The notes under the pieces were generated by a model. It worked only from the letters and a program-made list of their open reading frames with translations. It made no database searches and had not been told where the DNA came from. 64,000 bases of DNA from Asterias rubens. Taxonomy: Eukaryota. Within the stretch, counting starts at the first letter, position 1. Every line of letters starts with the position of its first letter. The stretch covers positions 24,056,001 to 24,120,000 of the forward strand of contig NC_047062.1 of assembly GCF_902459465.1 (NCBI RefSeq), written 5' to 3'. The position numbers and the translations under genes were made by a program. Positions 1,263 to 21,696 of the stretch are shown one piece after another.

Positions 1263-1303
1263 AACCGTGTCCTTTTTGAGAGTTTTCTGAGGTAGAGTGT
1301 TGT

Positions 1304-1445
1304 ACCAGACTGAAGTGAGCACCAAATTTGGGCCCAACACCAAATTTGGTGATGGCAAAAAAATTTGGTGCTAGCACCAAATTTCGATATAACTGTCGAC
1401 GACCGTCATTACCCGTCGAAGACAGTGCGGAAGGATTGTACACGC
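1304..1445 (+). repeat. Left terminal (non-tandem) TIR domain with nested palindromes
   Basis: Reverse complement of 17479-17620 with no difference seen by eye; perfect palindromes CACCAAATTTGGTG (1338-1351) and AAATTTGGTGCTAGCACCAAATTT (1361-1384). Confidence 0.9.
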
Positions 1446-4400
1446 GTAAGGTATGGGTAGATTCAAAGCCAAGAGTTCTATCTTAATTGGGCAATATTAT
1501 TAATTTTTATTTCATAAATCTATTCCTCATACCCCTGGCTAAATCAGATTAGCGCCCCAGTGTTTGAAGTCTGCTAATTAGCTTAGCCCAATTAATTTAG
1601 TCAATGAAGAATATACGAATTTTTGTACTGTATGCGCTGTATGCGTAAGGTATGGGCAATTACAAAGCCAAGAGTTCCATCTTAATTGGAAAAATTTATT
1701 AATTTTTAGTTCATAAATCTATTCCTCATACCCCTGGCTATATCAGATTAGCGCCCCAACTTGTTAAGTCTGCTAATTAGCTCAGCCCAATTAATTTAAT
1801 AAGGGAAGAACTTGCTAGTTTTTGTACTTTATACGCTGTTTATATGCTATGCAAAGAACAAGCGTATAGGTACGGGCATATACAAAGCCAAGAGTTCCAT
1901 CTTAATTAGCAAAAATTATTAATTTTTATTTCATAAATCTATTCCTCATACGTCTGGCTATATAAGCCCGGCGCCCCAATGTGTTAAGTCTTCTAATTAG
2001 TTCAGCCCAATTAATTTAATAAGGGAAGAATTTACGAGTTTTTCTACTTTTTACGCTGTACATTATGCTGTACACAAAGAACAAGCGTAAGATATGGGCA
2101 ATTACAAAGCCAAGAGTTCCATCTTAATTGGAAAATATTATTAAATTTTATTTCATAAATCTGTTTCTCATATCCCTGGCTATAATAAGCCCGGCGCCCC
2201 AATGTGTTAAGTCTTCTAATTAGTTCAGCCCAATTAATTTAATAAGGGAATAATTTACGAGTTTTTCTACTTTATACGCTGTACATTATGCTATACACAA
2301 AGAACAAGCGTAAGGTATGGGCAATTACAAAGCCAAGAGTTCCATCTTAATTAGAAAATATTATTAATTTTTATTTCATAAATCTATTCCTCATACCTCT
2401 GGCTATATAAGCCCGGCGCCCCAATGTGTTAAGTCTTCTAATTAGTTCAGCCCAATTAATTTAATAAGGGAAGAATTTACGAGTTTTTCTACTTTTTACG
2501 CTGTACATTATGCTATACACAAAGAACAAGCGTAAGATACGGGCAATTACAAAGCCAAGAGTTCCATATTAATTGGAAAATATTATTAATTTTTATTTCA
2601 TAAATCTATTCCTCATACCTCTGGCTATATAAGCCCGGCGCCCCAATGTGTTAAGTCTGCTAATTAGCTCAGCCCAATTAATTTAATAAGGGAAGAACTT
2701 GCTAGTTTTTGTACTTTATACGCTGTTTATATGCTATGCAAAGAACAAGCGTCTAGGTACGGGCATATACAAAGCCAAGAGTTCCATCTTAATTGGAAAA
2801 TATTATTAATTTTTATTTCATAAATCTATTCCTCATACCTCTGGCTATATAAGCCCGGCGCCCCAATGTGTTAAGTCTTCTAATTAGTTCAGCCCAATTA
2901 ATTTAATAAGGGAAGAACTTGCTAGTTTTTGTACTTTATACGCTGTTTATATGCTATGCAAAGAACAAGCGTCTAGGTACGGGCATATACAAAGCCAAGA
3001 GTTCCATCTTAATTGGAAAATATTATTAATTTTTATTTCATAAATCTATTCCTCATACCTCTGGCTATATAAGCCCGGCGCCCCAATGTGTTAAGTCTGC
3101 TAATTAGCTCAGCCCAACTAAATTAATCAGGGAAGATTTTACGAATTTGTGTACTTTTACGCTATACTTATATAACAAGCGCGTAAGGTATGGGAAATTA
3201 CAAAGCCAAGAGTTCCACCTTAATTGGAAAATATTATTAATTTTTATTTCATCAAATATGTTTCCCATACCCCTGGCTATATATGCCCAGCGCCCCAATG
3301 TGTTAAGTCTGCTAATTAGTTCAGCCCAATTAATTTAATAAGGGAAGAATTTACGAGTTTTTCTACTTTTTACGCTGTTTATATGATATGCAAAGAACAA
3401 GTGTATAGGTACGGGCAATTACAAAGCCAAGAGTTCCATATTAATTGGACAATATTATAAATTTTTATTTCATAAATCTGTTCCTCATACCCCTGGCTAT
3501 ATAAGCCCGGCGCCCCAATGTGTTAAGTCTTCTAATTAGTTCAGCCCAATTAATTTAATAAGGGAAGAATTTACGAGTTTTTCTACTTTTTACGCTGTAC
3601 ATTATGCTATACACAAAGAACAAGCGTAAGATACGGGCAATTACAAAGCCAAGAGTTCCATATTAATTGGAAAATATTATTAATTTTTATTTCATAAATC
3701 TGTTCCTCATACCCCTGGCTATATAAGCCCGGCGCCCCAATGTGTTAAGTCTTCTAATTAGTTCAGCCCAATTAATTTAATAAGGGAATAATTTACGAGT
3801 TTTTCTACTTTTTACGCTGTTTATATGATATGCAAAGAACAAGTGTATAGGTACGGGCAATTACAAAGCCAAGAGTTCCATATTAATTGGACAATATTAT
3901 TAATTTTTATTTCATAAATCTGTTCCTCATACCCCTGGCTATATAAGCCCGGCGCCCCAATGTGTTAAGTCTGCTAATTAGCTCAGCCCAATTAATTTAA
4001 TAAGGGAAGAACTTGCTAGTTTTTGTACTCTATACGCTGTTTATATGCTATGCAAAGAACAAGCGTATAGGTACGGGCATATACAAAGCCAAGAGTTCCA
4101 TCTTAATTAGCAAAAATTATTAATTTTTATTTCATAAATCTATTCCTCATACCTCTGGCTATATAAGCCCGGCGCCCCAATGTGTTAAGTCTTCTAATTA
4201 GTTCAGCCCAATTAATTTAATAAGGGAAGAATTTACGAGTTTTTCTACTTTTTACGCTGTACATTATGCTATACACAAAGAACAAGCGTAAGATATGGGC
4301 AATTACAAAGCCAAGAGTTCCATCTTAATTGGAAAATATTATTAATTTTTATTTCATAAATCTGTTCCTCATACCCCTGGCTATATAAGCCCGGCGCCCC

Positions 4401-7400
4401 AATGTGTTAGGTCTTCTAATTAGTTCAGCCCAATTAATTTAATAAGGGAAGAATTTACGAGTTTTTCTACTTTTTACGCTGTACATTTAATGCTATACAC
4501 AAAGAACAAGCGTAAGATATGGGCAATTACAAAGCCAAGAGTTCCATCTTAATTGGAAAATATTATTAATTTTTATTTCATAAATCTGTTCCTCATACCC
4601 CTGGCTATATAAGCCCGGCGCCCCAATGTGTTAGGCCTTCTAATTAGTTCAGCCCAATTAATTTTATAAGGGAAGAATTTACGAGTTTTTCTACTTTTTA
4701 CGCTGTACATTATGCTATACACAAAGAACAAGCGTAAGATATGGGCAATTACAAAGCCAAGAGTTCCATCTTAATTGGAAAATATTATTAATTTTTATTT
4801 CATAAATCTGTTCCTCATACCCCTGGCTATATAAGCCCGGCGCCCCAATGTGTTAAGTCTTCTAATTAGTTCAGCCCAATTAATTTAATAAGGGAAGAAT
4901 TTACGAGTTTTTCTACTTTTTACGCTGTACATTATGCTATACACAAAGAACAAGCGTATAGGTACGGGCATATACAAAGCCAAGAGTTCCATCTTAATTA
5001 GCAAAAATTATTAATTTTTATTTCATAAATCTGTTCCTCATACCCCTGGCTATATAAGCCCGGCGCCCCAATGTGTTAAGTCTTCTAATTAGTTCAGCCC
5101 AATTAATTTAATAAGGGAAGAATTTACGAGTTTTTCTACTTTTTACGCTGTACATTATGCTATACACAAAGAACAAGCGTAAGATATGGGCAATTACAAA
5201 GCCAAGAGTTCCATCTTAATTGGAAAATATTATTAATTTTTATTTCATAAATCTGTTTCTCAAACCCCTGGCTATATAAGCCCGGCGCCCCAATGTGTTA
5301 AGTCTGCTAATTAGCTCAGCCCAATTAATTTAATAAGGGAAGAACTTGCTAGTTTTTGTACTCTATACGCTGTTTATATGCTATGCAAAGAACAAGCGTA
5401 TAGGTACGGGCATATACAAAGCCAAGAGTTCCATCTTAATTAGCAAAAAAATTTAATTTTTATTTCATAAATCTATTCTTCGTACCTCTGGCTATATAAG
5501 CCCGGCGCCCCAATGTGTTAAGTCTTCTAATTAGTTCAGCCCAATTAATTTAATAAGGGAAGAATTTACGAGTTTTTCTACTTTTTACGCTGTACATTAT
5601 GCTATACACAAAGAACAAGCGTAAGATACGGGAAATTACAAAGCCAAGAGTTCCATCTTAATTGGAAAATATTATTAATTTTTATTTCATAAATCTGTTC
5701 CTCATACCCCTGGCTATATAAGCCCGGCGCCCCAATGTGTTAAGTCTTCTAATTAGCTCAGCCCAATGAATTTAATAAGGGAAGAATGTACGAGTTTTTT
5801 TACTTTTTACGCTGTACATTATGCTATACACAAAGAACAAGCGTAAGATACGGGCAATTACAAAGCCAAGAGTTCCATCTTAATTGGAAAATATTATTAA
5901 TTTTTATTTCATAAATCTGTTCCTCATACCCCTGGCTATATAAGCCCGGCGCCCCAATGTGTTAAGTCTTCTAATTAGTTCAGCCCAATTAATTTAATAA
6001 GGGAAGAATTTACGAGTTTTTCTACTTTTTACGCTGTACATTATGCTATACACAAAGAACAAGCGTAAGATACGGGCAATTACAAAGCCAAGAGTTCCAT
6101 CTTAATTGGAAAATATTATTAATTTTTATTTCATAAATCTGTTCCTCATACCCCTGGCTATATAAGCCCGGCGCCCCAATGTGTTAAGTCTGCTAATTAG
6201 CTCAGCCCAATTAATTTAATAAGGGAAGAACTTGCTAGTTTTTGTACTCTATACGCTGTTTATATGCTATGCAAAGAACAAGCGTATAGGTACGGGCATA
6301 TACAAAGCCAAGAGTTCCATCTTAATTAGCAAAAATTATTAATTTTTATTTCATAAATCTGTTCCTCATACCCCTGGCTATATAAGCCCGGCGCCCCAAT
6401 GTGTTAAGTCTGCTAATTAGCTCAGCCCAATTAATTTAATAAGGGAAGAACTTGCTAGTTTTTGTACTCTATACGCTGTTTATATGCTATGCAAAGAACA
6501 AGCGTATAGGTACGGGCATATACAAAGCCAAGAGTTCCATCTTAATTAGCAAAAATTATTAATTTTTATTTCATAAATCTATTCTTCGTACCTCTGGCTA
6601 TATAAGCCCGGCGCCCCAATGTGTTAAGTCTTCTAATTAGTTCAGCCCAATTAATTTAATAAGGGAAGAATTTACGAGTTTTTCTACTTTTTACGCTGTA
6701 CATTATGCTATACACAAAGAACAAGCGTAAGATACGGGCAATTACAAAGCCAAGAGTTCCATCTTAATTGGAAAATATTATTAATTTTTATTTCATAAAT
6801 CTGTTCCTCATACCCCTGGCTATATAAGCCCGGCGCCCCAATGTGTTAAGTCTGCTAATTAGCTCAGCCCAATTAATTTAATAAGGGAAGAACTTGCTAG
6901 TTTTTGTACTCTATACGCTGTTTATATGCTATGCAAAGAACAAGCGTATAGGTACGGGCATATACAAAGCCAAGAGTTCCATCTTAATTAGCAAAAATTA
7001 TTAATTTTTATTTCATAAATCTATTCCTCATACCTCTGGCTATATAAGCCCGGCGCCCCAATGTGTTAAGTCTTCTAATTAGTTCAGCCCAATTAATTTA
7101 ATAAGGGAAGAATTTACGAGTTTTTCTACTTTTTACGCTGTACATTACGCTATACACAAAGAACAAGCGTAAGATACGGGCAATTACAAAGCCAAGAGTT
7201 CCATCTTAATTGGAAAATATTATTAATTTTTATTTCATAAATCTGTTCTTCATACCCCTGGCTATATAAGCCCGGCGCCCCAATGTGTTAAGTCTTCTAA
7301 TTAGTTCAGCCCAATTAATTTAATAAGGGAAGAATTTACGAGTTTTTCTACTTTTTACGCTGTACATTATGCTATACACAAAGAACAAGCGTAAGATACG

Positions 7401-8615
7401 GGAAATTACAAAGCCAAGAGTTCCATCTTAATTGGAAAATATTATTAATTTTTATTTCATAAATCTATTCTGTATACCTCTAGCTAAGTCAGATTAGCGC
7501 CCCAACTTGTTAAGTCTGCTAATTAGCTCAGCCCAATTAATTTAATCAAGGAAGAATTTATGAGTGTTGATACTGTATGCGCTGTATGCGTAAGGTAGGG
7601 GAAAATAAAAAGGCAAGAGTTCCATCTTAATTGGAAAATATTATTAGTTTTTATTTCATAAATCTGTTCCTTGTACCTTTGGCCATGTCAGATTAGCGCC
7701 CCATTGTGTAACGTTTTCTAATGAGCTCAGCCCAATTAATCCAATTAGGGAAGAAATTGCGAATTCCGTACTGTTTATACGCTAATATGCATAATACATC
7801 ATGCGTAGGGTATAGGCAAAAACTAAACAAACGAATTCCATCTAACTTTGAAAATATTAATATTATTTATCTCATAAATGTGTTCCACATACCCATGGCT
7901 AAATCAATTTAGTACCTCGACGTGTTACCTTACCTAATTAGCTCAGCCCAATTAAATTAATAAAGAGAATCATTCATGAATTTCTTACTATACGTTGTAT
8001 GAACACACGCGTAAGGTATGGGCAAATACAAAGCCAAGAGTTCCATCTTAATTGGTAAATATGATTAATTTTTATTTCATAAATCTATTCTTTATACCTC
8101 TAGCTACGTCAGATTAGCGCCCCAACTTGTTAAGTCTGCTAATTAGCTCAGCCCAATTAATTTAATCAAGGAAGAATTTACGAATGTTGATACTGTATGC
8201 GCTGTATGCGTAAGGTAGGGGAAAATACAAAGCCAAGAGTTCCATCTTAATTGGAAATTATTATTAATTTTTATTTCATAAATCTGTTCCTCACACCCAT
8301 GGCTATATCAGATTAGCGCCCCAACTTGTTAAGACTGCTTATTAGCTCAGCCCAATTAAATTAATAAGGGAATAATTTACTAGTTTTTGTACTGTATAAC
8401 GCTATTAATATGCTATACAAAGAACAAGCGTAAGGTTTGGGCAAATAAAAAGGCAAGAGTTCCATCTTAATTGGAAAATATTATTAATTTTTATTTCATA
8501 AATCTGTTACTCATACCCCTGGCTATATCAGACTAGCGCCCCAACTTGATAAGTCAGCTAATTAGCTCAGCCCAATTAATTTAATCAGGGAAGAATTTAC
8601 TAGTTTTTGTACTGT
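1446..8615 (+). repeat. Left arm: ~33 tandem units of ~200-223 bp
   Basis: Anchor CAAAGCCAAGAGTTCC recurs at 2105, 2328, 2550, 2770, 2990 etc. (period 220-223); edge units more diverged. Confidence 0.95.
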
Positions 8616-8911
8616 AAGATGTAGCCACTTGCACGAACTTGTTCTAATATATGAAAAAGACATGTTACCCCTTCACAGAGAGTTTGCAGACGGTTTTTGC
8701 AAAAAAAAAAAAAATATGTAATAAAAAGCCTCTAAAATTAGCGAGGGAAAAATGGTCTAAAAGAGTCCGTCAGCCAGGTACTCAGGGAATATACCTAACG
8801 CCACCAACAAAAGAAATTAAATTTAAAGGTCTTTCAACGAATACGACAAATACAAGAATAAACACTAAAACATGCTCCCAAACGTAAAAATGTCAGTGAC
8901 CCCTCGCATGA

Positions 8912-10750
8912 ACCAACACAGCCAATCATGACGAAAAAGCCTATAAACACGAACACCGGCCATCACTTTTTCCAGTCGGCAAGGGCATATGTAACAACTC
9001 TGTTTCATGTTGGTGGGTATCATCAATCCAGGCTCTTTTTCCTGTTTACATAACAGTTCGTAGAACTGCAAGTCAAATTCCGAATTTAAACGCTTTCAAG
9101 CGTGAATTAATTCTTACTTTTGAAAAACTTAAAAACCAAGTGTGTCAAGCAGTTCCTTTCTATTCCGTTAAACAAAGTATTAGAACGTGTGCAAGATTTT
9201 GTTCAATAGATCCACTCCAACAGCAGGATGCAGCAGAATTTTTAACCTGTCATGAGGTTTGTAGCTTTTTCCATGATGCTGGTGTGTCGCCCTATATAAT
9301 TAGTAAACAGACACGGCGATGTGATCGATGTAAAGACATTTCCACAGTCAATACAAGGACCCCAATTTTGCCAGTAACAGCAATGGACCAAATAATAGAA
9401 TCTGGCATACGAGAGTATTTTCGCTCAAACGACTTGTGTAATGTTTGTAATCGGGGAGTAAGATATAACGAATCAGTAATAACCCTTGCACCTCAAATTG
9501 TCATTGTTCAATTAATGCGCTTTAGATGGGAAGACGGGAGAGCTTCAAAAGTATTGGACAATGTTTATGTGGAAGATGTAATTGATCTTACCCCACTTTG
9601 TGCAGATCAAACATCGAAATCCTTGTATCATTTAATATCAGTCGTGGTACACCGTGGAAACAGTGTTCAAAGTGGTCACTATGTTACTTATGTTAATGAT
9701 CGCATTAACCAGAGAAAAATATTGTATGATGATCATGAAGTTGACCAAGTGACTGACCAAGAATTTCAACAATCTGTTGATGAAGGCGCCTACATCCTCA
9801 TTTATGAAAAATGTCATGATTTAACCAAATATACTGATGAGCATGCAACAGATGGGGATTCGGCAACGCCTTCAGGTTCAAGTACCCAGCATCAAAACAA
9901 TGACAACCGTAACAATGCTCCTCTTAACAGTAAACATTTCTCAGTTACACCAAACGAAAAAGTCTTTGTTGAAAATGTGTGGGGTTACATTGACGAAAGT
10001 ATTGTACACAAAGATGCACTCAAATTAAAAACAAATAATGAAACTATTACTTTCTGCCATCTTGCCATACTCAATTTTCACATACCTAATACATTATTTC
10101 AAACCTTGCAGACGACTGGAACAGAATATATAAGGGGATGGACGAGTAATTTTTTTGTTGATTTTTACCTCCAGCAGTTAGCCGACAGCAATGAGGTTAC
10201 GTCAACCATTGGTGCACTTCTGTGTTCTGAAACACTGGCTATAGTTGATAGAAAAGAAAGTGTTTCAACTTACCGTTCAGTGAAGCGCAAATGTATACAT
10301 AACAATCGGTGGTGCGATTTGATACTCTGTCCCCTTTTGAAGAGCAACCATTTTGTATTGTACGTCATAGATCAAAATAAACAATGCATTTTGTCTTATG
10401 ATCCACTGCGTCCATCATTATTCACATCAATGCCAAAACACGCAAAAGCTTTTGCAGATTTTTTTTCTTCTGGTCTGAGCCTCGTTCACTGGGATAAACT
10501 ACCAAATATCATACAACCTGGAGGCAAGGTAGCAATAACAAATTCTACGTCGGTTTCTCAAAATGATTTTTCCGCATGTGGTCTGTATTGCTGCGTTTTT
10601 GCTGAAGAGGTCGCTTTGGGAAAACGAAAGGTGAGACACATTGATACAAGTGAAGAACTTAGATTATACTTAACAATGAACGTCATTCGTAGAGCTCACA
10701 TATTAGATGTCGGGCTAAAACAGCTGTTTGGTCAAAGTTTTCATAATTAG
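8912..10750 (+). CDS. Element cargo: USP (peptidase C19) domain fused to Ulp1/SENP-like (peptidase C48) domain; start codon uncertain
   Basis: Frame open from 8912. Cys box GICNNSVSCWWVSSIQAL (Cys 9008-9010), QQQDAAEFL, two CxxC pairs, APQIVIVQLMRF, His box VVVHRGNSVQSGHYVTY and YDD; then NHFVLYVID...YDPL and QNDFSACGLYCC. Confidence 0.82.
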   Translation, partial: TNTANHDEKAYKHEHRPSLFPVGKGICNNSVSCWWVSSIQALFPVYITVRRTASQIPNLNAFKRELILTFEKLKNQVCQAVPFYSVKQSIRTCARFCSIDPLQQQDAAEFLTCHEVCSFFHDAGVSPYIISKQTRRCDRCKDISTVNTRTPILPVTAMDQIIESGIREYFRSNDLCNVCNRGVRYNESVITLAPQIVIVQLMRFRWEDGRASKVLDNVYVEDVIDLTPLCADQTSKSLYHLISVVVHRGNSVQSGHYVTYVNDRINQRKILYDDHEVDQVTDQEFQQSVDEGAYILIYEKCHDLTKYTDEHATDGDSATPSGSSTQHQNNDNRNNAPLNSKHFSVTPNEKVFVENVWGYIDESIVHKDALKLKTNNETITFCHLAILNFHIPNTLFQTLQTTGTEYIRGWTSNFFVDFYLQQLADSNEVTSTIGALLCSETLAIVDRKESVSTYRSVKRKCIHNNRWCDLILCPLLKSNHFVLYVIDQNKQCILSYDPLRPSLFTSMPKHAKAFADFFSSGLSLVHWDKLPNIIQPGGKVAITNSTSVSQNDFSACGLYCCVFAEEVALGKRKVRHIDTSEELRLYLTMNVIRRAHILDVGLKQLFGQSFHN

Positions 10751-10799
10751 TGATCAAATCAAACACAATATGCTTTTTAATTAATCAAATATTATGTAA

Positions 10800-11830
10800 C
10801 AAGATAGATCTCTCGCTCTTGTAATTACCCATTCCATACGCAGCATGTGCTAGCGTATACTGAATAAATATGTGAAATCGTCTCTCGATTAACATGATAA
10901 CTTGTTTCTACTTAAGCTGGAACTCTTATTTGCCCATACCTTAGTAGGCATGTATTTAATAAAGAATATTAGCCCACGCAGTAGGAATTTGTGAGGTATT
11001 AATTTGGCTGAGCTAATTAACCAATGTTACATGGTATATAGGGTGACTAGTCGAATATTAGCTCCCCTCGGTATGGAAATTGAAAAACTAGTTTGTCAAC
11101 TTCCAATACCTCGGGAAGCTATTATCGACTAGTCACCCTCAAACCATATAGAGCAAGTTCAATCAACAGACTAAAGTTGACTACTGTTGACCATTTGGCG
11201 ATTTCGCCTGTTTGTGAATCTTCAATCTATTAAATAAATTTTGCTGAGCTAATTAGCCAATGTTACATGGTTTATTTAGGGTGACTAGTCGATTAGTAGA
11301 ACATTGACTATAGTGGTTGAAAAATGGTCGCTGATCGAACTTGCTCCATGTTATCTTTGTATAGTACATACCTCATACATATTCATGACCTAGAGTCGAG
11401 TTCTCATTGGTCCATTCATAACCAGGTGTTAATTTTGCTAATTACCAAGCGGTACGTGAGTATTCACGCAAGTGGTAGATGCGCATGACAAGTAATAGCT
11501 CCCCGGGAGCTATTCTACTTGTCATGCGCACTACCATTGCGCGACGTCATCCCTGGGCGATATTGATCGTGGCACCGTTTGTATACACGCGCACGAACAG
11601 CGCTCTCTAAGCGACATCCAACACATGAACAAACTTATAATGTGCATTTTGTTTCAAAGTCATCATTTTCTCTTGCACAAAACTCATGTTCCGGTAACTG
11701 AATATGTACGAAGTATAGTAAAACAAATAACATGATTTATTTCAGGTGACTAGTCGACGAGAGGCCCCCGAGGTATTGGGTAAACTTCCTATACCTATAG
11801 GGGAGCTAATATCGACTAGTCACCGTCAAA
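10800..11830. repeat. Degenerate inner right-arm zone with short palindromic cassettes
   Basis: Decayed arm-unit fragments (gctgagctaatta, ttgcccatacc) interleaved with hairpins at 11040-11139, 11473-11536 and 11745-11824. Confidence 0.6.
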
Positions 11831-14800
11831 CCATGTTTTGTATATAACAGCCAGGGGTGTGTGTTACAGATTTATGGATTAAAAAATTGTACCTTCTTTC
11901 TATTAAAAGATGGAACCATTGGCTTTGTATTTGCCCATTATGTTACACACGTATTAAGCATGGCGAATTAGAGCATACAATAGGAAATTCGTGTTGTGAA
12001 TTTAATTGGGTTGAGCTAAGTAGCCGATGATTAACACGTATGAGCACTAATCTGATATTGGTTTCAGATTTATGGATTAAAACATTGTACTATTTTTCAA
12101 TGAAGATGGAACCATTGGCTTTGTATTCGCCCATACCTTAAGCATGTATTTATGTATAGGCAAATAGCACATGCAGTAAAGTATGAAGTTCGTTAATTAT
12201 AGACTTGTTTACATTAATTGGGCTGATTTCTGATCAGAGTTGTGAAAAGATTTGAGAAATAAAACATGATTATTTCTTCTAAAGAAGATGGAACTCTTGC
12301 CTTTGTAATTACCCATTTAATACACAGCTTGCAGCTTGTATTAGCCCAACGAGTAGAAAATTCGTAATTTTTCCTCTTGACTAAATTAATTGGGCTGAGC
12401 TAATTATCAAACGTAAACACGTCGGGCGCTAATCTTCCAGGGGTATGATGATATTTTTTAATTCGTAATCTCTTCCTTGATTAAATTAATTGGGCTGAGC
12501 TAATTAGCAGACTTAACAAGTTGGGGCGCTAGTCTGATATAGCCAGGGGTATGAGGAATAGATTTATGAAATAACAATTAAAAATATTTTCCAATTAAGA
12601 TGGAACTCTTGGCTTTGTAATTGCCCCTTACTTACGCGCTTGTTATCTATAAGTATATACAGCGTATATATACAGTACAAAAACTCGTAAATTCTTCCCT
12701 TATTAAATTAATTGGGCTGAGCTAATTAGCAGACTTATCAAGTTGGGGCGCTAGTCTGATATAGCCAGGGGTATGAGGAATAGATTAATGAAATAAAAAT
12801 TAATAATATTTTCCAATTAAGATGGAACTCTTGGCTTTGTAATTGCCCATTACTTACGCGCTTGTTATCTAAGTATATATAGCGTATATATACAGTACAA
12901 AACTAGTAAATTCTTCTATTATTAAATTAATTGGGCTGAGCTAATTAGCTGACTTATCAAGTTGGGGCGCTAGTCTGATATAGCCATGGGTGTGAGGAAC
13001 AGATTTATGAAATAAAAATTAATAATAATTTCCAATTAAGATGGAACTCTTGGCTTTGTAATTGCCCATTACTTACGCGCTTGTTATCTATAAGTATATA
13101 CAGCGTATCTATACAGTACAAAAACTAGTAAATTCTTCCCTTATTAAATTAATTGGGCTGAGCTAATAAGCAGACTTATCAAGTTGGGGCGCTAGTCTGA
13201 TATAGCCAGGGGTATGAGGAATAGATTTATGAAATAAAAATTAATAATATTTCCTAATTAAGATGGAACTCTTGGCTTTGTAGTTGCCCATACCTTACGC
13301 TTGTTCTTTGTGTATAGCATATAAAATGTACAGCGTATAAAGTACAAAAACTCGTAAATTCTTCGCTGATTAAATTAATTGGGCTGAGCTAATTAGCAGA
13401 CTTATCAAGTTGGGGCGCTAATCTGATATAGCCAGGGGTATGAGGAATAGAGTTATGAAATAAAAATTCATAATATTTTCCAATTAAGATGGAACTCTTG
13501 GCTTTGTAATTGCCCATTACTTACGCGCTTGTTATCTAAGTATATACAGCGTATATATACAGTACAAAAACTAGTAAATTCTTCCCTTATTAATTTAATT
13601 GGGCTGAGCTAATTAACAGTCTTAACAAGTTGGGGCGCTAATCTGATATAGCCAGGGGTTTGAGGAATAGATTTATGAAATAAAAATTAATAATATTTTC
13701 CAATTAAGATGGAACTCTTGCCTTTTTATTTGCCCAAACCTTACGCTTGTTCTTTGTATAGCATATTAATAGCGTTATACAGTACAAAAACTAGTAAATT
13801 ATTCCCTTATTAATTTAATTGGGCTGAGCTAATTAGCAGTCTTAACAAGTTGGGGCGCTAATCTGATATAGCCATGGGTGTGAGGAACAGATTTATGAAA
13901 TAAAAATTAATAATATTTTCCAATTAAGATGGAACTCTTGGCTTTGTAATTGCCCATACCTTACGCTTGTTCTTTGTGTATAGCATAATGTACAGCGTAA
14001 AAAGTAGAAAAACTCGTAAATTCTTCCCTTATTAAATTAATTGGGCTGAACTAATTAGAAGACCTAACACATTGGAGCGCCGGGCTTATATAGCCAGGGG
14101 TATGAGGAACAGATTTATGAAATAAAAATTAATAATATTTTCCAATGAGAATGGAACTCTTGGCTTTGTAATTGCCCATATCTTACGCTTGTTCTTTGTG
14201 TATAGCATAATGTACAGCGTAAAAAGTAGAAAAACTCGTAAATTCTTCCCTTATTTAATTAATTGGGCTGAACTAATTAGAAGACCTAACACATTGGGGC
14301 GCCGGGCTTATATAGCCAGGGGTATGAGGAACAGATTTATGAAATAAAAATTAATAATATTTTCCAATGAGAATGGAACTCTTGGCTTTGTAATTGCCCG
14401 TATCTTACGCTTGTTCTTTGTGTATAGCATAATGTACAGCGTAAACAGTAGAAAAACTCGTAAATTCTGCCCTTATTAAATTAATTGGGCTGAACTAATT
14501 AGAAGACTTAACACATTGGGGCGCCGGGCTTATATAGCCAGAGGTATGAGGAATAGATTTATGAAATAAAAATTAATAATTTTTGCTAATTAAGATGGAA
14601 CTCTTGGCTTTGTATATGCCCGTACCTATACGCTTGTTCTTTGTGTATAGCATAATGTACAGCGTAAAAAGTAGAAAAACTCGTAAATTCTTCCCTTATT
14701 AAATTAATTGGGCTGAACTAATTAGAAGACTTAACACATTGGGGCGCCGGGCTTATATAGCCAGGGGTATGAGGAACAGATTTATGAAATAAAAATTAAT

Positions 14801-17478
14801 AATATTTTCCAATTAAGATGGAACTCTTGGCTTTGTAATTGCCCATATCTTACGCTTGTTCTTTGTGTATAGCATAATGTACAGCGTAAAAAGTAGAAAA
14901 ACTCGTAAATTCTTCCCTTATAAAATTAATTGGGCTGAACTAATTAGAAGACTTAACACATTGGGGCGCCGGGCTTATATAGCCAGGGGTATGAGGAACA
15001 GATTTATGAAATAAAAATTAATAATATTTTCCAATTAAGATGGAACTCTTGGCTTTGTAATTGCCCATATCTTACGCTTGTTCTTTGTGTATAGCATAAT
15101 GTACAGCGTAAAAAGTAGAAAAACTCGTAAATTCTTCCCTTATTAAATTAATTGGGCTGAACTAATTAGCAGACTTAACACATTGGGGCGCTGGGCATAT
15201 ATAGCCAGGGGTATGGGAAACATATTTGATGAAATAAAAATTAATAATATTTTCCAATTAAGATGGAACTCTTGGCTTTGTAATTGCCCATATCTTACGC
15301 TTGTTCTTTGTGTATAGCATAATGTACAGCGTAAAAAGTAGAAAAACTCGTAAATTCTTCCCTTATTAAATTAATTGGGCTGAACTAATTAGCAGACTTA
15401 ACACATTGGGGCGCTGGGCATATATAGCCAGGGGTATGGGAAACATATTTGATGAAATAAAAATTAATAATATTTTCCAATTAAGGTGGAACTCTTGGCT
15501 TTGTAATTTCCCATACCTTACGCGCTTGTTATATAAGTATAGCGTAAAAGTACACAAATTCGTAAAATCTTCCCTGATTAATTTAGTTGGGCTGAGCTAA
15601 TTAGCACACTTAATACTCTGGGGCGCTAATCTGACATAGCCAGAGGTATGAGGAATAGATTTATGAAATAAAAATTAATAATATTTTCCAATTAAGATGG
15701 AACTCTTGGCTTTGTATATGCCCGTACCTAGACGCTTGTTCTTTGCATAGCATATAAACAGCGTATAAAGTACAAAAACTAGCAAGTTCTTCCCTTATTA
15801 AATTAATTGGGCTGAGCTAATTAGAAGACTTAACACATTGGGGCGCCGGGCTTATATAGCCAGAGGTATGAGGAATAGATTTATGAAATAAAAATTAATA
15901 ATATTTTCTAATTAAGATGGAACTCTTGGCTTTGTATATGCCCGTACCTAGACGCTTGTTCTTTGCATAGCATATAAACAGCGTATAAAGTACAAAAACT
16001 AGCAAGTTCTTCCCTTATTAAATTAATTGGGCTGAGCTAATTAGTAGACTTAACACTATGGGGCGCTAATCTGATATAGCCAGGGGTATGAGGAACATAT
16101 TCATGAAATAAAAATTAATAATATTGTCCAATTAATATGGAACTCTTGGCTTTGTAATTGCCCGTACCTATACACTTGTTCTTTGCATATCATATAAACA
16201 GCGTAAAAAGTAGAAAAACTCGTAAATTCTTCCCTTATTAAATTAATTGGGCTGAACTAATTAGCAGACTTAACACATTGGGGCGCCGGGCTTATATAGC
16301 CAGGGGTATGGGAAACAGATTTATAAAATAAAAATTAATAATATTTTCCAATTAAGATGGAACTCTTGGCTTTGTAATTGCCCATATCTTACGCTTGTTC
16401 TTTGTGTACAGCATAATGTACAGCGTAAAAAGTAGATAAAATTGGAAAATTCTTCCCTTATTAAATTAATTGGGCTGAACTAATTAGAAGACTTAACACA
16501 TTGGGGCGCCGGGCTTATATAGCCAGAGGTATGAGGAATAAATTTATGAAATAAAAATTAATAATATTTTCTAATTAAGATGGAACTCTTGGCTTTGTAA
16601 TTGCCCATACCTTACGCTTGTTCTTTGTGTATAGCATAATGTACAGCGTATAAAGTAGAAAAACTCGTAAATTATTCCCTTATTAAATTAATTGGGCTGA
16701 ACTAATTAGAAGACTTAACACATTGGGGCGCCGGGCTTATATAGCCAGGGATATGAGAAACAGATTTATGAAATAAAATTTAATAATATTTTCCAATTAA
16801 GATGGAACTCTTGGCTTTGTAATTGCCCATATCTTACGCTTGTTCTTTGTGTACAGCATAATGTACAGCGTAAAAAGTAGAAAAACTCGTAAATTCTTCC
16901 CTTATTAAATTAATTGGGCTGAACTAATTAGAAGACTTAACACATTGGGGCGCCGGGCTTATATAGCCAGACGTATGAGGAATAGATTTATGAAATAAAA
17001 ATTAATAATTTTTGCTAATTAAGATGGAACTCTTGGCTTTGTATATGCCCGTACCTATACGCTTGTTCTTTGCATAGCATATAAACAGCGTATAAAGTAC
17101 AAAAACTAGCAAGTTCTTCCCTTATTAAATTAATTGGGCTGAGCTAATTAGCAGACTTAACAAGTTGGGGCGCTAATCTGATATAGCCAGGGGTATGAGG
17201 AATAGATTTATGAACTAAAAATTAATAAATTTTTCCAATTAAGATGGAACTCTTGGCTTTGTAATTGCCCATACCTTACGCATACAGCGCATACAGTACA
17301 AAAATTCGTATATTCTTCATTGACTAAATTAATTGGGCTAAGCTAATTAGCAGACTTCAAACACTGGGGCGCTAATCTGATTTAGCCAGGGGTATGAGGA
17401 ATAGATTTATGAAATAAAAATTAATAATATTGCCCAATTAAGATGGAACTCTTGGCTTTGAATCTACCCATACCTTAC
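11830..17478 (-). repeat. Right arm: ~26 tandem units, inverted relative to the left arm
   Basis: GGAACTCTTGGCTTTG recurs every ~200-224 bp; reverse complement of the left-arm unit. Confidence 0.95.
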
Positions 17479-17620
17479 GCGTGTACAATCCTTCCGCACT
17501 GTCTTCGACGGGTAATGACGGTCGTCGACAGTTATATCGAAATTTGGTGCTAGCACCAAATTTTTTTGCCATCACCAAATTTGGTGTTGGGCCCAAATTT
17601 GGTGCTCACTTCAGTCTGGT
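17479..17620 (-). repeat. Right terminal TIR domain
   Basis: Reverse complement of 1304-1445. Confidence 0.9.
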
Positions 17621-17878
17621 GAGTGTTGTTGTTAGTTTGTTCGTTTTTAAATAGCGCCACCAATAAACCAGAATTGTTTTGAAGCGCCCTCTTGCGTCCA
17701 AAACGAATGCTCTTCGTACATTACATAAGTTGCATTGAATCCCCTGTCCTTCATGCACTGGTACGAAATTTTCTTCCTCCAGGACGTAAATAGTGTTCAA
17801 AATACACAGAAAATCACTGCCGGCAGAATGGAACAAAGTTGAAGTTTTTGTTTTATGCTGTAAATTGGATTTGCCGAG
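17621..17878. promoter_or_regulatory. Probable divergent promoter / 5' UTR segment shared by CHAC2 (-) and UQCC3 (+)
   Basis: Lies between the right TSD and a GAG|GTAAGT donor at 17879 that can splice to an acceptor at 18298 just upstream of the UQCC3-like ATG; promoter role inferred from gene geometry. Confidence 0.55.
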
Positions 17879-18319: not shown

Positions 18320-19197
18320 ATGTCCGGCAAGCTTACAAGAATGTTATTAAGTCTAGGTCTTATTGGAGCGTCTGGTGCAGTTGGTTGGGGACTTCTCAAA
18401 CTTGTCTCACCAAGTCCTGAAGTTCTACTGAAGGTATTTTAACATTTCCCAAAGAATGGAGGTAGAACTACCTTCATCCTCAAAGTCGGGATGTTTTTGC
18501 CAAAATGTTCTGCGAACTGACCACAGAGACCGAGACTCTTGAATTGCTCACCTGCAACCCCTACATGTAAATTAAAGTAGGATAATGGCCAATTTCAAAA
18601 CAGGGCGTCCACAAGACACCAAGATACCCCTGCTGGATTTTGGGGGAAAAGTGTGTCCAACTTTGAATTGCTCACCTGCAACCCCCACATGTAAATTAAA
18701 GTAGGATAATGGCCAATTTCAAAACAGGGCGTCCACAAGACACCAAGATACACCTGCTGGATTTTGGGGAAAAAGTGTGTCCAACTTTGCTGGCAAATTA
18801 AACAATGGTTGTCAAAATTGATACTAAGTGGTGTAGTTACTAAACATTTACAGATAAAACAGGGTGTCCAAAAGACACTCCTCTGTCACACACAGAGGTA
18901 CTTTTCTAGTTAAATACATGTACTGTGTTTTTAAGTTTGTTCACATTAAAAACTTTGTTTTTAGGTAAATTTAATGAACACTTAAAAGTATTGTATGAGT
19001 ACGTTAGCAAGCATCATTCACTGTCATATAATTCTGTGCTTTACACTCCATTGATTTGTCAACAGCAACTTCCAGAAAACAACCCATCAGTAATGAGGGA
19101 GTCTAAACAGAAAACCCAGGAGTGGATGGATGCATTGAAAGCTGCTGCAGACGACCCCAACCCAATCTATAAGTCATTCGGGGCCAAGAAAAACTGA
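18320..19197 (+). CDS. UQCC3: UQCC3-like complex III assembly factor, 81 aa (exons 18320-18433, 19066-19197)
   Basis: MSGKLTRMLLSLGLIGASGAVGWGLLKLVSPSPEVLLK|QLPENNPSVMRESKQKTQEWMDALKAAADDPNPIYKSFGAKKN; Gly-rich TM then SP...LP....P pattern as recalled for UQCC3; phase-0 GT-AG intron. Confidence 0.75.
18537..18788. repeat. Tandem duplication, 2 x ~124 bp, in the UQCC3 intron
   Basis: gaattgctcacctgcaaccc...gtgtgtccaacttt occurs at 18541 and 18665. Confidence 0.9.
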
Positions 19198-21303: not shown

Positions 21304-21696
21304 TTATGTGCTCTGTTCAGTTCGTCTAGCAAGCACCTGGGTGTTAAACTCGTGCATGAATTCTGACGACAGCTCTTGGAGTTGAGTTAAAAACAGTGTT
21401 CTTTCCACTTCGCTCCATTCCTGAAACCAATCCGTGAAGAGTTTGAGCTGGCACTGGTATATACTTGGTGCCTTGTCGTTTACTTTCAGAGTCTGCATGG
21501 CATCAAATAGGGTTGTAACATCTGGCGGCACTGCCTTATTCACAAGGTCCGATAAAAAGTCCTTTCTTTGGTAGTGGCTCCAAGTTGAGAACCAGTGAAG
21601 GACGGTTTTCAGCTCCTGCTGGAATACGCTGGCAGCCATTTCTTCTCTAGTTGGTGGTGCTGCAGCTGCCATAGTCACATCATGTCCTTGTGTCAT
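21304..21696 (-). CDS. C14orf119: C14orf119-like protein, 130 aa, single coding exon
   Basis: QELKTVLHWFSTWSHYQRKDFLSDLVNKAVP and PSIYQCQLKLFTDWFQEWSEVER match the family pattern as recalled; acceptor just upstream of the ATG. Confidence 0.85.
   Translation of the reverse strand: MTQGHDVTMAAAAPPTREEMAASVFQQELKTVLHWFSTWSHYQRKDFLSDLVNKAVPPDVTTLFDAMQTLKVNDKAPSIYQCQLKLFTDWFQEWSEVERTLFLTQLQELSSEFMHEFNTQVLARRTEQST

Follow-up and report, generated by a model that had tools for sequence, protein, structure and literature searches.

A 64,000-nt stretch of the Asterias rubens genome (NC_047062.1, positions 24,056,001 to 24,120,000 of the forward strand; hereafter the window, whose own numbering is used throughout) contains an open reading frame (ORF) at 8912-10750 in which a ubiquitin-specific protease (USP, peptidase C19) is joined to an Ulp1/SENP-type protease (peptidase C48). 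In all probability, this ORF is the C-terminal USP-Ulp1 module of a single large transposase gene from a Foldback/Rehavkus-like Mutator element, of which the window carries a defective copy. The interest lies in the family to which this element belongs, the window itself being a correct domain call on a dead, ordinary copy.

Two proteases in one open frame

The frame is open for 612 codons on the plus strand, from 8912 to a stop at 10748-10750, a length with a probability of ~4e-19 of occurring by chance given the base composition of the window (otherwise typical eukaryotic DNA, with two ORFs of at least 150 aa in its 64 kb). The Pfam UCH profile (PF00443) matches residues 25-298 over profile positions 2-254 of 254 (E 4e-26, 92.6 bits for a cut-off of 23.9), while Peptidase_C48 (PF02902) is recognized by a small margin, scoring 23.7 bits on the whole ORF, and 26.3 when only the C-terminal half is searched, for a cut-off of 20.7. 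An AlphaFold model computed from a 43-row family alignment (mean predicted local distance difference test, pLDDT, of 87) consists of two compact domains, residues 21-305 and 339-612, separated by a disordered linker. The first is matched by Foldseek to USP36, USP18 and USP30 (E ~5e-19 to 1e-18, template modelling (TM) score 0.72-0.79), and by VIA-align to USP2 (Z 28.6), with USP2, USP14 and USP12 all scoring Z 27-29 over residues 20-307. The second is best superposed by VIA-align on yeast Ulp1 (1euv; Z 21.8, 218/221 residues aligned, over residues 340-596) and SENP1 (Z 20.9), which together (Z 21-22) outscore the NEDD8 protease (Z 17.4); such scores do not fix modifier specificity.

Both active sites are complete. 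In the USP domain, the Cys box reads GICNNSVSCWW, with the catalytic Cys33 encoded by TGT at 9008-9010 and the oxyanion Asn28 five residues before it, followed by QQDAAEF (residues 104-110), the two CxxC pairs of the fingers (codons at 9320 and 9437), His256 within SGHYVTY (9677-9679) and Asp273 (9728-9730). A phmmer alignment with USP18 has a register in which Cys27 would be catalytic, which was rejected: this residue is a Ser in P0002, a 985-aa relative, and is not conserved in the family. Cys33 was kept because it is conserved in the family together with Asn28, with the canonical GLxNxGNTC spacing. In the C48 domain, the order is His, Asp, Gln, Cys, with His480 at 10349-10351, Asp497 17 residues further on (10400) and Gln550 preceding Cys556 (10577-10579), and in a residue-level alignment these four residues fill the catalytic positions of SENP2. 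The earlier note, made from the letters alone, had described a USP joined to an Ulp1/SENP-type protease with both catalytic sets apparently intact, and this description holds: each residue it named is present at its coordinate, both Pfam thresholds are passed and, as in the profile and structure check that it proposed, both folds are matched by the models.

A foldback element with satellite arms

The ORF lies in the ~3.2-kb unique core of a foldback transposon of 16,317 bp (1304-17620). That the protease pair sits inside a mobile element, as the earlier note had supposed, is borne out by an exact 9-bp target site duplication (TSD) and by inverted arms of 6-7 kb each, built of tandem repeats of ~222 bp. 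The outermost 881 nt of the two ends (1304-2184 and 16740-17620) are 100% complementary, while the interior units are 60-98% alike, and this pattern suggests that the element was inserted recently or that its arms are still being homogenised. For the palindromic ends, an assembly artefact was discarded in view of the unique host flanks, the exact TSD and the presence of the core in independent contigs of other samples. The arm units come in two alternating variants, which gives the arrays a higher-order period of 442-445 bp.

Each arm unit has one copy of a 19-nt motif, TTGGGCTGAGCTAATTAGC (60 in the window, between 1573 and 17351), which lies on the minus strand in the left arm and in the opposite orientation in the right, and a scan of the window found it to be absent outside the element. 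The same motif is present in the arm units of contig L003 (L003:1-454 and 5355-6516), from a family whose proteins are only 48% identical and whose elements have the same layout, with units of 208-213 bp. These occurrences make the motif a likely candidate for a transposase-binding site.

The transposase to which the proteases belong

A word-indexed protein search returned two clusters only, P0001, which is nearly identical to the window protein and whose 90% cluster also includes longer members of the window element's own family, and P0002, which is 48% identical. P0002 is longer by ~400 residues at the N-terminus, an extension whose end aligns to the window upstream of 8912. In tblastn, P0002 residues 318-345 match 8617-8700 in a different frame and residues 356-970 match 8735-10531 through three stops, so that homology starts exactly at the end of the left satellite array, at 8616/8617. 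Part of what is missing upstream of this point is found in a sister copy, contig L001, whose DNA is 98.7% identical to window positions 8616-11109 and contains 1,424 nt more of the gene. Its frame has 1,167 sense codons and one stop, and contains a transposase core, the USP and the C48 in a single frame, with the motifs DATG (first Asp), IMIDGS (second Asp), HQCASH (HxCxxH) and RTQGIIE (Glu). A Mutator/IS256-type DDE transposase is thus not in the window copy but is present in L001 and in relatives. The pair, which the earlier note saw as carried by a mobile element, is not independent cargo: in L001 and at least 10 distant relatives, a single frame encodes transposase, USP and C48.

Pfam found no significant domain in the N-terminal transposase parts of P0002 and 16 relatives, its one match being a weak one to MULE (Mutator-like element; P0041, E 1.4e-3), and the transposase was therefore placed by structure prediction. 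Language-model features of the region also pointed to MULE clusters. The family alignment shows a Cys/His-rich N-terminal region followed by DATG, DxS, HxCxSHxM..K and RTxGxxE......LK, the last of which is presumably the Mutator-type Glu motif. For a model of this region (pLDDT 80), the top match in Swiss-Prot/AFDB is the Drosophila melanogaster NOF-FB 120.7-kDa protein (E 1.8e-25, TM 0.62), twelve orders of magnitude ahead of the rest, followed by Kluyveromyces lactis alpha3, the FAR1/FHY3 family, ZSWIM proteins and IS256-family transposases. In the PDB, the best match is ISCth4, of the IS256 family (Z 11.7), and the N-terminus is weakly WRKY-like. The element is placed with Foldback/Rehavkus because a NOF-FB-like fold of the transposase goes together with a 9-bp TSD and satellite-bearing inverted termini. 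Two other assignments were rejected: Zisupton/KDZ, given the 9-bp TSD and the match of the transposase model to the FB-NOF/FAR1/IS256 group, and a Helitron-like element, given the terminal inverted repeats, the TSD and the absence of any Rep or helicase domain in the relatives scanned.

A defective copy

At 8616/8617, where the left satellite arm joins the core, the transposase part has been deleted. Judging from its sequence, the window element is a non-autonomous deletion derivative that has lost everything 5' of the transposase-USP linker. The remnant of this linker has further lesions, some of which are private to the window (a polyA run lengthened by one A at ~8701, the loss of 3 nt at 8825 and a TA inserted at 8942-8943), while 14 nt at 8867 are missing in the window and also in contigs L004 and L005, two further sister copies. 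No ATG precedes the Cys box in the protease frame, whose first Met, residue 158 (9383), comes only after the catalytic Cys. An ATG at 8928 is in frame with the USP in L004 and L005, where the predicted protein P0171 begins MTKKPKHEHRPSLFPVGKG, and is out of the protease frame in the window because of the TA insertion. An intron removing 8868-8944 was considered and rejected, as there are no plausible splice sites and the sole GT...AG pair spans 13 nt. With no start codon before the catalytic Cys, the window copy therefore probably makes no active USP by ordinary initiation. What the earlier note had said of two intact proteases stands for the catalytic residues of both, but not for the copy as a gene, which is 5'-truncated, frameshifted and without a start codon.

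The four copies that were compared (the window, L001, L004 and L005) are 99.7-99.9% identical in the ORF, with 6 substitutions in 1.8 kb, of which 5 are nonsynonymous and 1 is synonymous, a number too small for the ratio of nonsynonymous to synonymous rates to be informative. The frame has remained open in the window because the copy is young and not because of selection on this copy, as argued by the 5:1 substitutions and by the presence of a lesion of its own in each copy: besides those of the window, a 62-nt deletion at 10661-10722 in L004, a 1-nt deletion at 9551 in L005, and one stop and a 5' truncation in L001.

It might be proposed instead that the 8928 ATG starts a separate USP-Ulp1 protein of ~606 residues, which the lineage of deletion derivatives would express and which would act in trans for the element family or for the host, a capacity that the window copy would have lost recently through its private 2-nt insertion. 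This ATG (MTKKP) is indeed in frame with the whole USP-C48 in L004 and L005, where P0171 was delineated by a gene caller, the 14-nt difference by which the transposase frame upstream is uncoupled is common to three of the four copies, and the ORF has fewer differences than its flanks. Such a protein is nevertheless improbable, considering that the window, L004 and L005 each have their own lesion (the TA insertion, the 62-nt and the 1-nt deletion, respectively), that nonsynonymous substitutions outnumber synonymous ones five to one, and that the same Met is merely internal to the long frame in L001.

The reading that we favour, in which the ORF is the end of a transposase gene in a dead copy, has points against it as well. 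When compared with L001, the ORF (8945-10750) differs at 5/1806 positions and its flanks (8617-8944 and 10751-11109) at 8/687 (Fisher p = 0.01), which amounts to ~4x fewer substitutions per site, with 0 indels in the ORF and four in the 5' flank. Some constraint on the proteases may show here, although the 5:1 ratio is unsupportive. Moreover, no complete autonomous copy of this exact family was recovered, L001 being without the N-terminal DNA-binding region and having a stop, and an assignment to Rehavkus rather than to Foldback proper rests on shared features and not on a tree with reference sequences.

A family of transposases with ubiquitin and SUMO proteases

A profile made of P0002 and the window protein was searched against 1.84 billion representatives and was then split into three local hidden Markov models (HMMs), of which the C48 model was refined. 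The search gave 30 matches below 1e-30, with many proteins matching the N-terminal part. Counted as representatives at 50% identity, the transposase-USP-C48 architecture is found in nine proteins by the local HMMs, to which P0060 is added by Pfam, whereas other relatives are transposase-C48 (9), transposase-USP (6), transposase-C48-USP (1) or C48-USP (1). Pfam confirms UCH together with Peptidase_C48 on P0018, P0019, P0021 and P0060. A PHD finger near the N-terminus is recognized in P0021 when its N-terminal part is searched alone (25.4 bits, cut-off 24), with a score below cut-off in P0006 (22.1). Members with a named source are from the shrimp Palaemon carinicauda, the sea cucumbers Holothuria leucospilota and Apostichopus japonicus, and the rotifer Adineta steineri, the remaining ones being from metagenomes, and transposase-only relatives occur in the fishes Oryzias latipes and Nothobranchius furzeri. 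Some relatives reach ~2,000 residues. The one in a TARA metagenome scaffold (L002:4495-10719) is an uninterrupted 2074-aa protein in the order PHD, transposase, C48, USP, and the swapped order of its proteases implies that the module was rearranged during the history of the family. Within the 13.6 kb of this scaffold there are no tandem arrays and no clear terminal inverted repeats.

Although overall identity is as low as 15-30%, the catalytic residues are kept in both domains. For the USP, Cys is found in 17/19 members, and His, Asp/Asn and Gln-x-Asp in 19/19 each; for the C48, His is found in 24/24 members, Asp in 22/24 (Asn in 2/24) and Cys in 23/24, and the RGW410 motif is conserved. That the catalytic residues have been kept across the wider family is the main indication that the proteases may be functional parts of these elements. 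A family-specific signature in the USP Cys box, C-W-[FWL], is shared by 17/19 members.

How the module may work

In intact relatives, a single polypeptide runs from a zinc-finger region for DNA binding, with an added PHD finger in some of them, through a DDE transposase core and the USP to the C48. If the satellite arms are bound by the transposase at their repeated sites, both proteases would be held at the element's own DNA, chromatin and transpososome, where they could free neighbouring proteins of ubiquitin and SUMO (or of a related modifier). Silencing that depends on SUMO and ubiquitin might thereby be weakened, as might the SUMO-targeted ubiquitylation by which DNA-bound complexes are extracted and degraded. 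Plausible targets would be silencing factors, histone ubiquitin marks and the SUMO-targeted ubiquitylation that removes tight DNA-protein complexes, and the two activities together would cover both steps of a SUMO-then-ubiquitin cascade. From conserved architecture and active sites, the module of intact elements is likely to be a transposase-tethered eraser of ubiquitin and SUMO, for which a putative role in anti-silencing, or in protecting the transposase, is plausible. The broader proposition, that metazoan Foldback-type transposons bring a deSUMOylase and a deubiquitinase in cis, tethered to their DNA, as a protein-level form of anti-silencing directed against SUMO-dependent heterochromatin or the SUMO-targeted ubiquitin ligase (STUbL)/p97 route, is a tentative one, which we put forward as more doubtful than probable.

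Another possible substrate is the element's own polyprotein, which the proteases would mature into transposase and accessory parts instead of acting on host ubiquitin or SUMO conjugates. Clan CE proteases process the polyproteins of adenoviruses, poxviruses and asfarviruses, and in the present family all domains lie in one frame, in relatives of up to ~2,000 residues, with a disordered linker between domains and, on P0017, a weak Peptidase_C5 co-match. We nevertheless consider self-processing very unlikely. The C48 domain matches Ulp1/SENP1 over essentially the whole fold, including the region of the N-terminal Trp motif, the zinc-ribbon fingers of the USP fold are built to grip a ubiquitin-like fold, neither a ubiquitin-like domain nor a conserved Gly-Gly site was found in the linkers, and there are relatives with a single protease or with the reversed order. 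As for a capture of host USP and SENP gene pieces in Pack-MULE style, with no role in element biology, Mutator-superfamily elements do capture host gene fragments (PMC6446971, PMC13317346), but this has hardly any chance of being the explanation here. Both domains are complete, lack introns and continue the transposase frame; in several animal phyla they accompany the same transposase family and retain their catalytic residues; and in 17/19 members the USP has a Cys-box signature specific to the family.

Features of the element and its surroundings

The coordinates of the element and of its protease module are collected in Table 1. In the non-coding 3' part of the core, short near-perfect palindromes are found at 11040-11139, 11464-11544 and 11745-11834, several of them built on GGTGACTAGTCGA...TCGACTAGTCACC, and these could be miniature insertions or structural elements.

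Table 1. Features of the foldback element and of the protease module in its core.
Feature	Position	Strand	Description
Left target site duplication	1295..1303	.	9 bp, GAGTGTTGT; identical to 17621-17629
Left terminal unique segment	1304..1443	+	140 bp, begins ACCAGACTGAAGTGAG
Left arm	1444..8616	+	~32 tandem units of ~199-222 bp; higher-order period ~442-445 bp
Transposase-USP linker remnant	8617..8944	+	Frameshifting indels and three main-frame stops; from tblastn with P0002 and sister-copy comparison
USP-linker-C48 open frame	8912..10750	+	612 codons plus stop; ORF reading, Pfam
Orphan ATG (MTKKP...)	8928..8930	+	Out of frame here; own frame stops after 41 codons
USP (peptidase C19) domain	8972..9826	+	Residues 21-305; Pfam, model, fold matches, family alignment
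USP key residues			Oxyanion Asn28, catalytic Cys33, Gln-Asp 105-106, His256, Asp273; zinc-ribbon CxxC pairs at 137 and 176
Polar linker	9827..9925	+	Residues 306-338; predicted disordered, pLDDT <50
Ulp1/SENP-type (peptidase C48) domain	9926..10747	+	Residues 339-612; Pfam, SENP2 and family alignments, Ulp1 fold match
C48 key residues			Trp410 motif RGWTSNFFVDFY, His480, Asp497, Gln550, Cys556
Internal non-coding 3' segment	10751..11860	+	Short palindromes; common to sister copies
Right arm	11861..17484	-	Degenerate units, then ~23 tandem units of ~222 bp; inverted with respect to left arm
Right terminal unique segment	17485..17620	-	Part of inverted terminus
Right target site duplication	17621..17629	.	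9 bp, GAGTGTTGT

The insertion lies upstream of a gene for a ChaC-like gamma-glutamylcyclotransferase, at 41 nt from its start codon (1262-1260, minus strand; exon 1086-1358), and therefore separates this gene from any promoter sequence farther out. On the other side, just outside the element, there is a 124-bp tandem duplication at 18539-18789, whose two copies are 97% alike, and further on a 130-aa ATG-to-stop ORF on the minus strand (21304-21696) that resembles a host gene or exon.

Comparison with known systems

The closest known elements are Rehavkus and Foldback (FB-NOF). Rehavkus is a Mutator relative with a 9-bp TSD, one ORF, a PHD finger and minisatellites (PMC6446971), and, as a foldback element, it may have more than 11 kb of tandem repeats in its inverted termini (PMC12581902). 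The element described here and its relatives share with these systems the 9-bp TSD, the long inverted termini with subterminal tandem repeats, the single large ORF and a DDE core with a CxxH motif, with NOF-FB as best structural match of the transposase; a PHD finger is recognized in the distant relative P0021 and, below the cut-off, in P0006. The element differs in its host range, Rehavkus having been reported only from arthropods and annelids, and its arms, 6-7 kb of 222-bp units, belong to the upper part of the size range. A search of the literature, with Repbase entries outside its scope, found neither a USP nor an Ulp1 described in Foldback- or Rehavkus-type transposases, and no USP-plus-Ulp1 module in Foldback, Rehavkus or MULE transposases.

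Single domains of this sort have precedents. Ulp1 domains are on record in Mutator, Ginger and Zisupton transposases (PMC2836005), and a C48 fused to or beside a cut-and-paste transposase is a likeness between our family and KI-MULEs and other plant MULEs, the Mutator elements of hydra and lancelet, Ginger1 and Zisupton. Transposon Ulp1 has been suggested to take part in transposition or in anti-silencing, and Bao and colleagues proposed a role in DNA repair for transposon Ulp1 and OTU domains (PMC2836005). However, these transposases carry one protease, whereas the present family has a USP and a C48 in tandem. The 8-bp TSD of Zisupton/KDZ (PMC12730594) and the 4-bp TSD and integrase-type core of Ginger also contrast with the 9 bp and the IS256/Mutator-like core found here.

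On the ubiquitin side, UCH and C48 domains are known in Helitron-like elements (PMC11417382) and a C19 on an IS5-like transposase of Trichomonas (PMC2836005). The Helitron-like HLE2 elements and this transposase are alike in having a ubiquitin-specific protease stably tied to the transposon's own protein, but unlike in that this protein is a rolling-circle Rep/helicase or an IS5-type transposase, for which these sources report no tandem C48 partner on the same polypeptide (PMC11417382, PMC2836005).

Cellular USP2, USP12/46, USP14, USP30, USP36, USP18 and SENP1/2/Ulp1 have the same folds and the same catalytic residues as the two domains, from which they differ by an identity of 15-22%, by a Cys box that reads TCYMN where SCWW is found here, and by the attachment of the domains here to a transposase. 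To our knowledge, no cellular protein of this kind combines a USP with an Ulp1/SENP.

Ubiquitin and SUMO protease domains recur in unrelated transposon superfamilies (Ulp1 in MULEs, Ginger and Zisupton, OTU/UCH in Helitrons), and the present family offers a clear test case, with two erasers whose active sites are conserved, placed on a Foldback-type transposase in recently active elements. Should the proteases prove necessary for mobility or for escape from silencing, this would link genome defence by SUMO and ubiquitin to a transposon countermeasure, and could help explain the large satellite arrays seeded by foldback elements. The in-cis anti-silencing proposed for the module would follow a logic comparable to that of VANC of the VANDAL elements and of the TET/JBP genes of fungal transposons. 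Set against what is known, single domains of this type in other transposon superfamilies, what appears to be new, as far as the literature search reaches, is the tandem USP-plus-Ulp1 module on a Foldback-type transposase.

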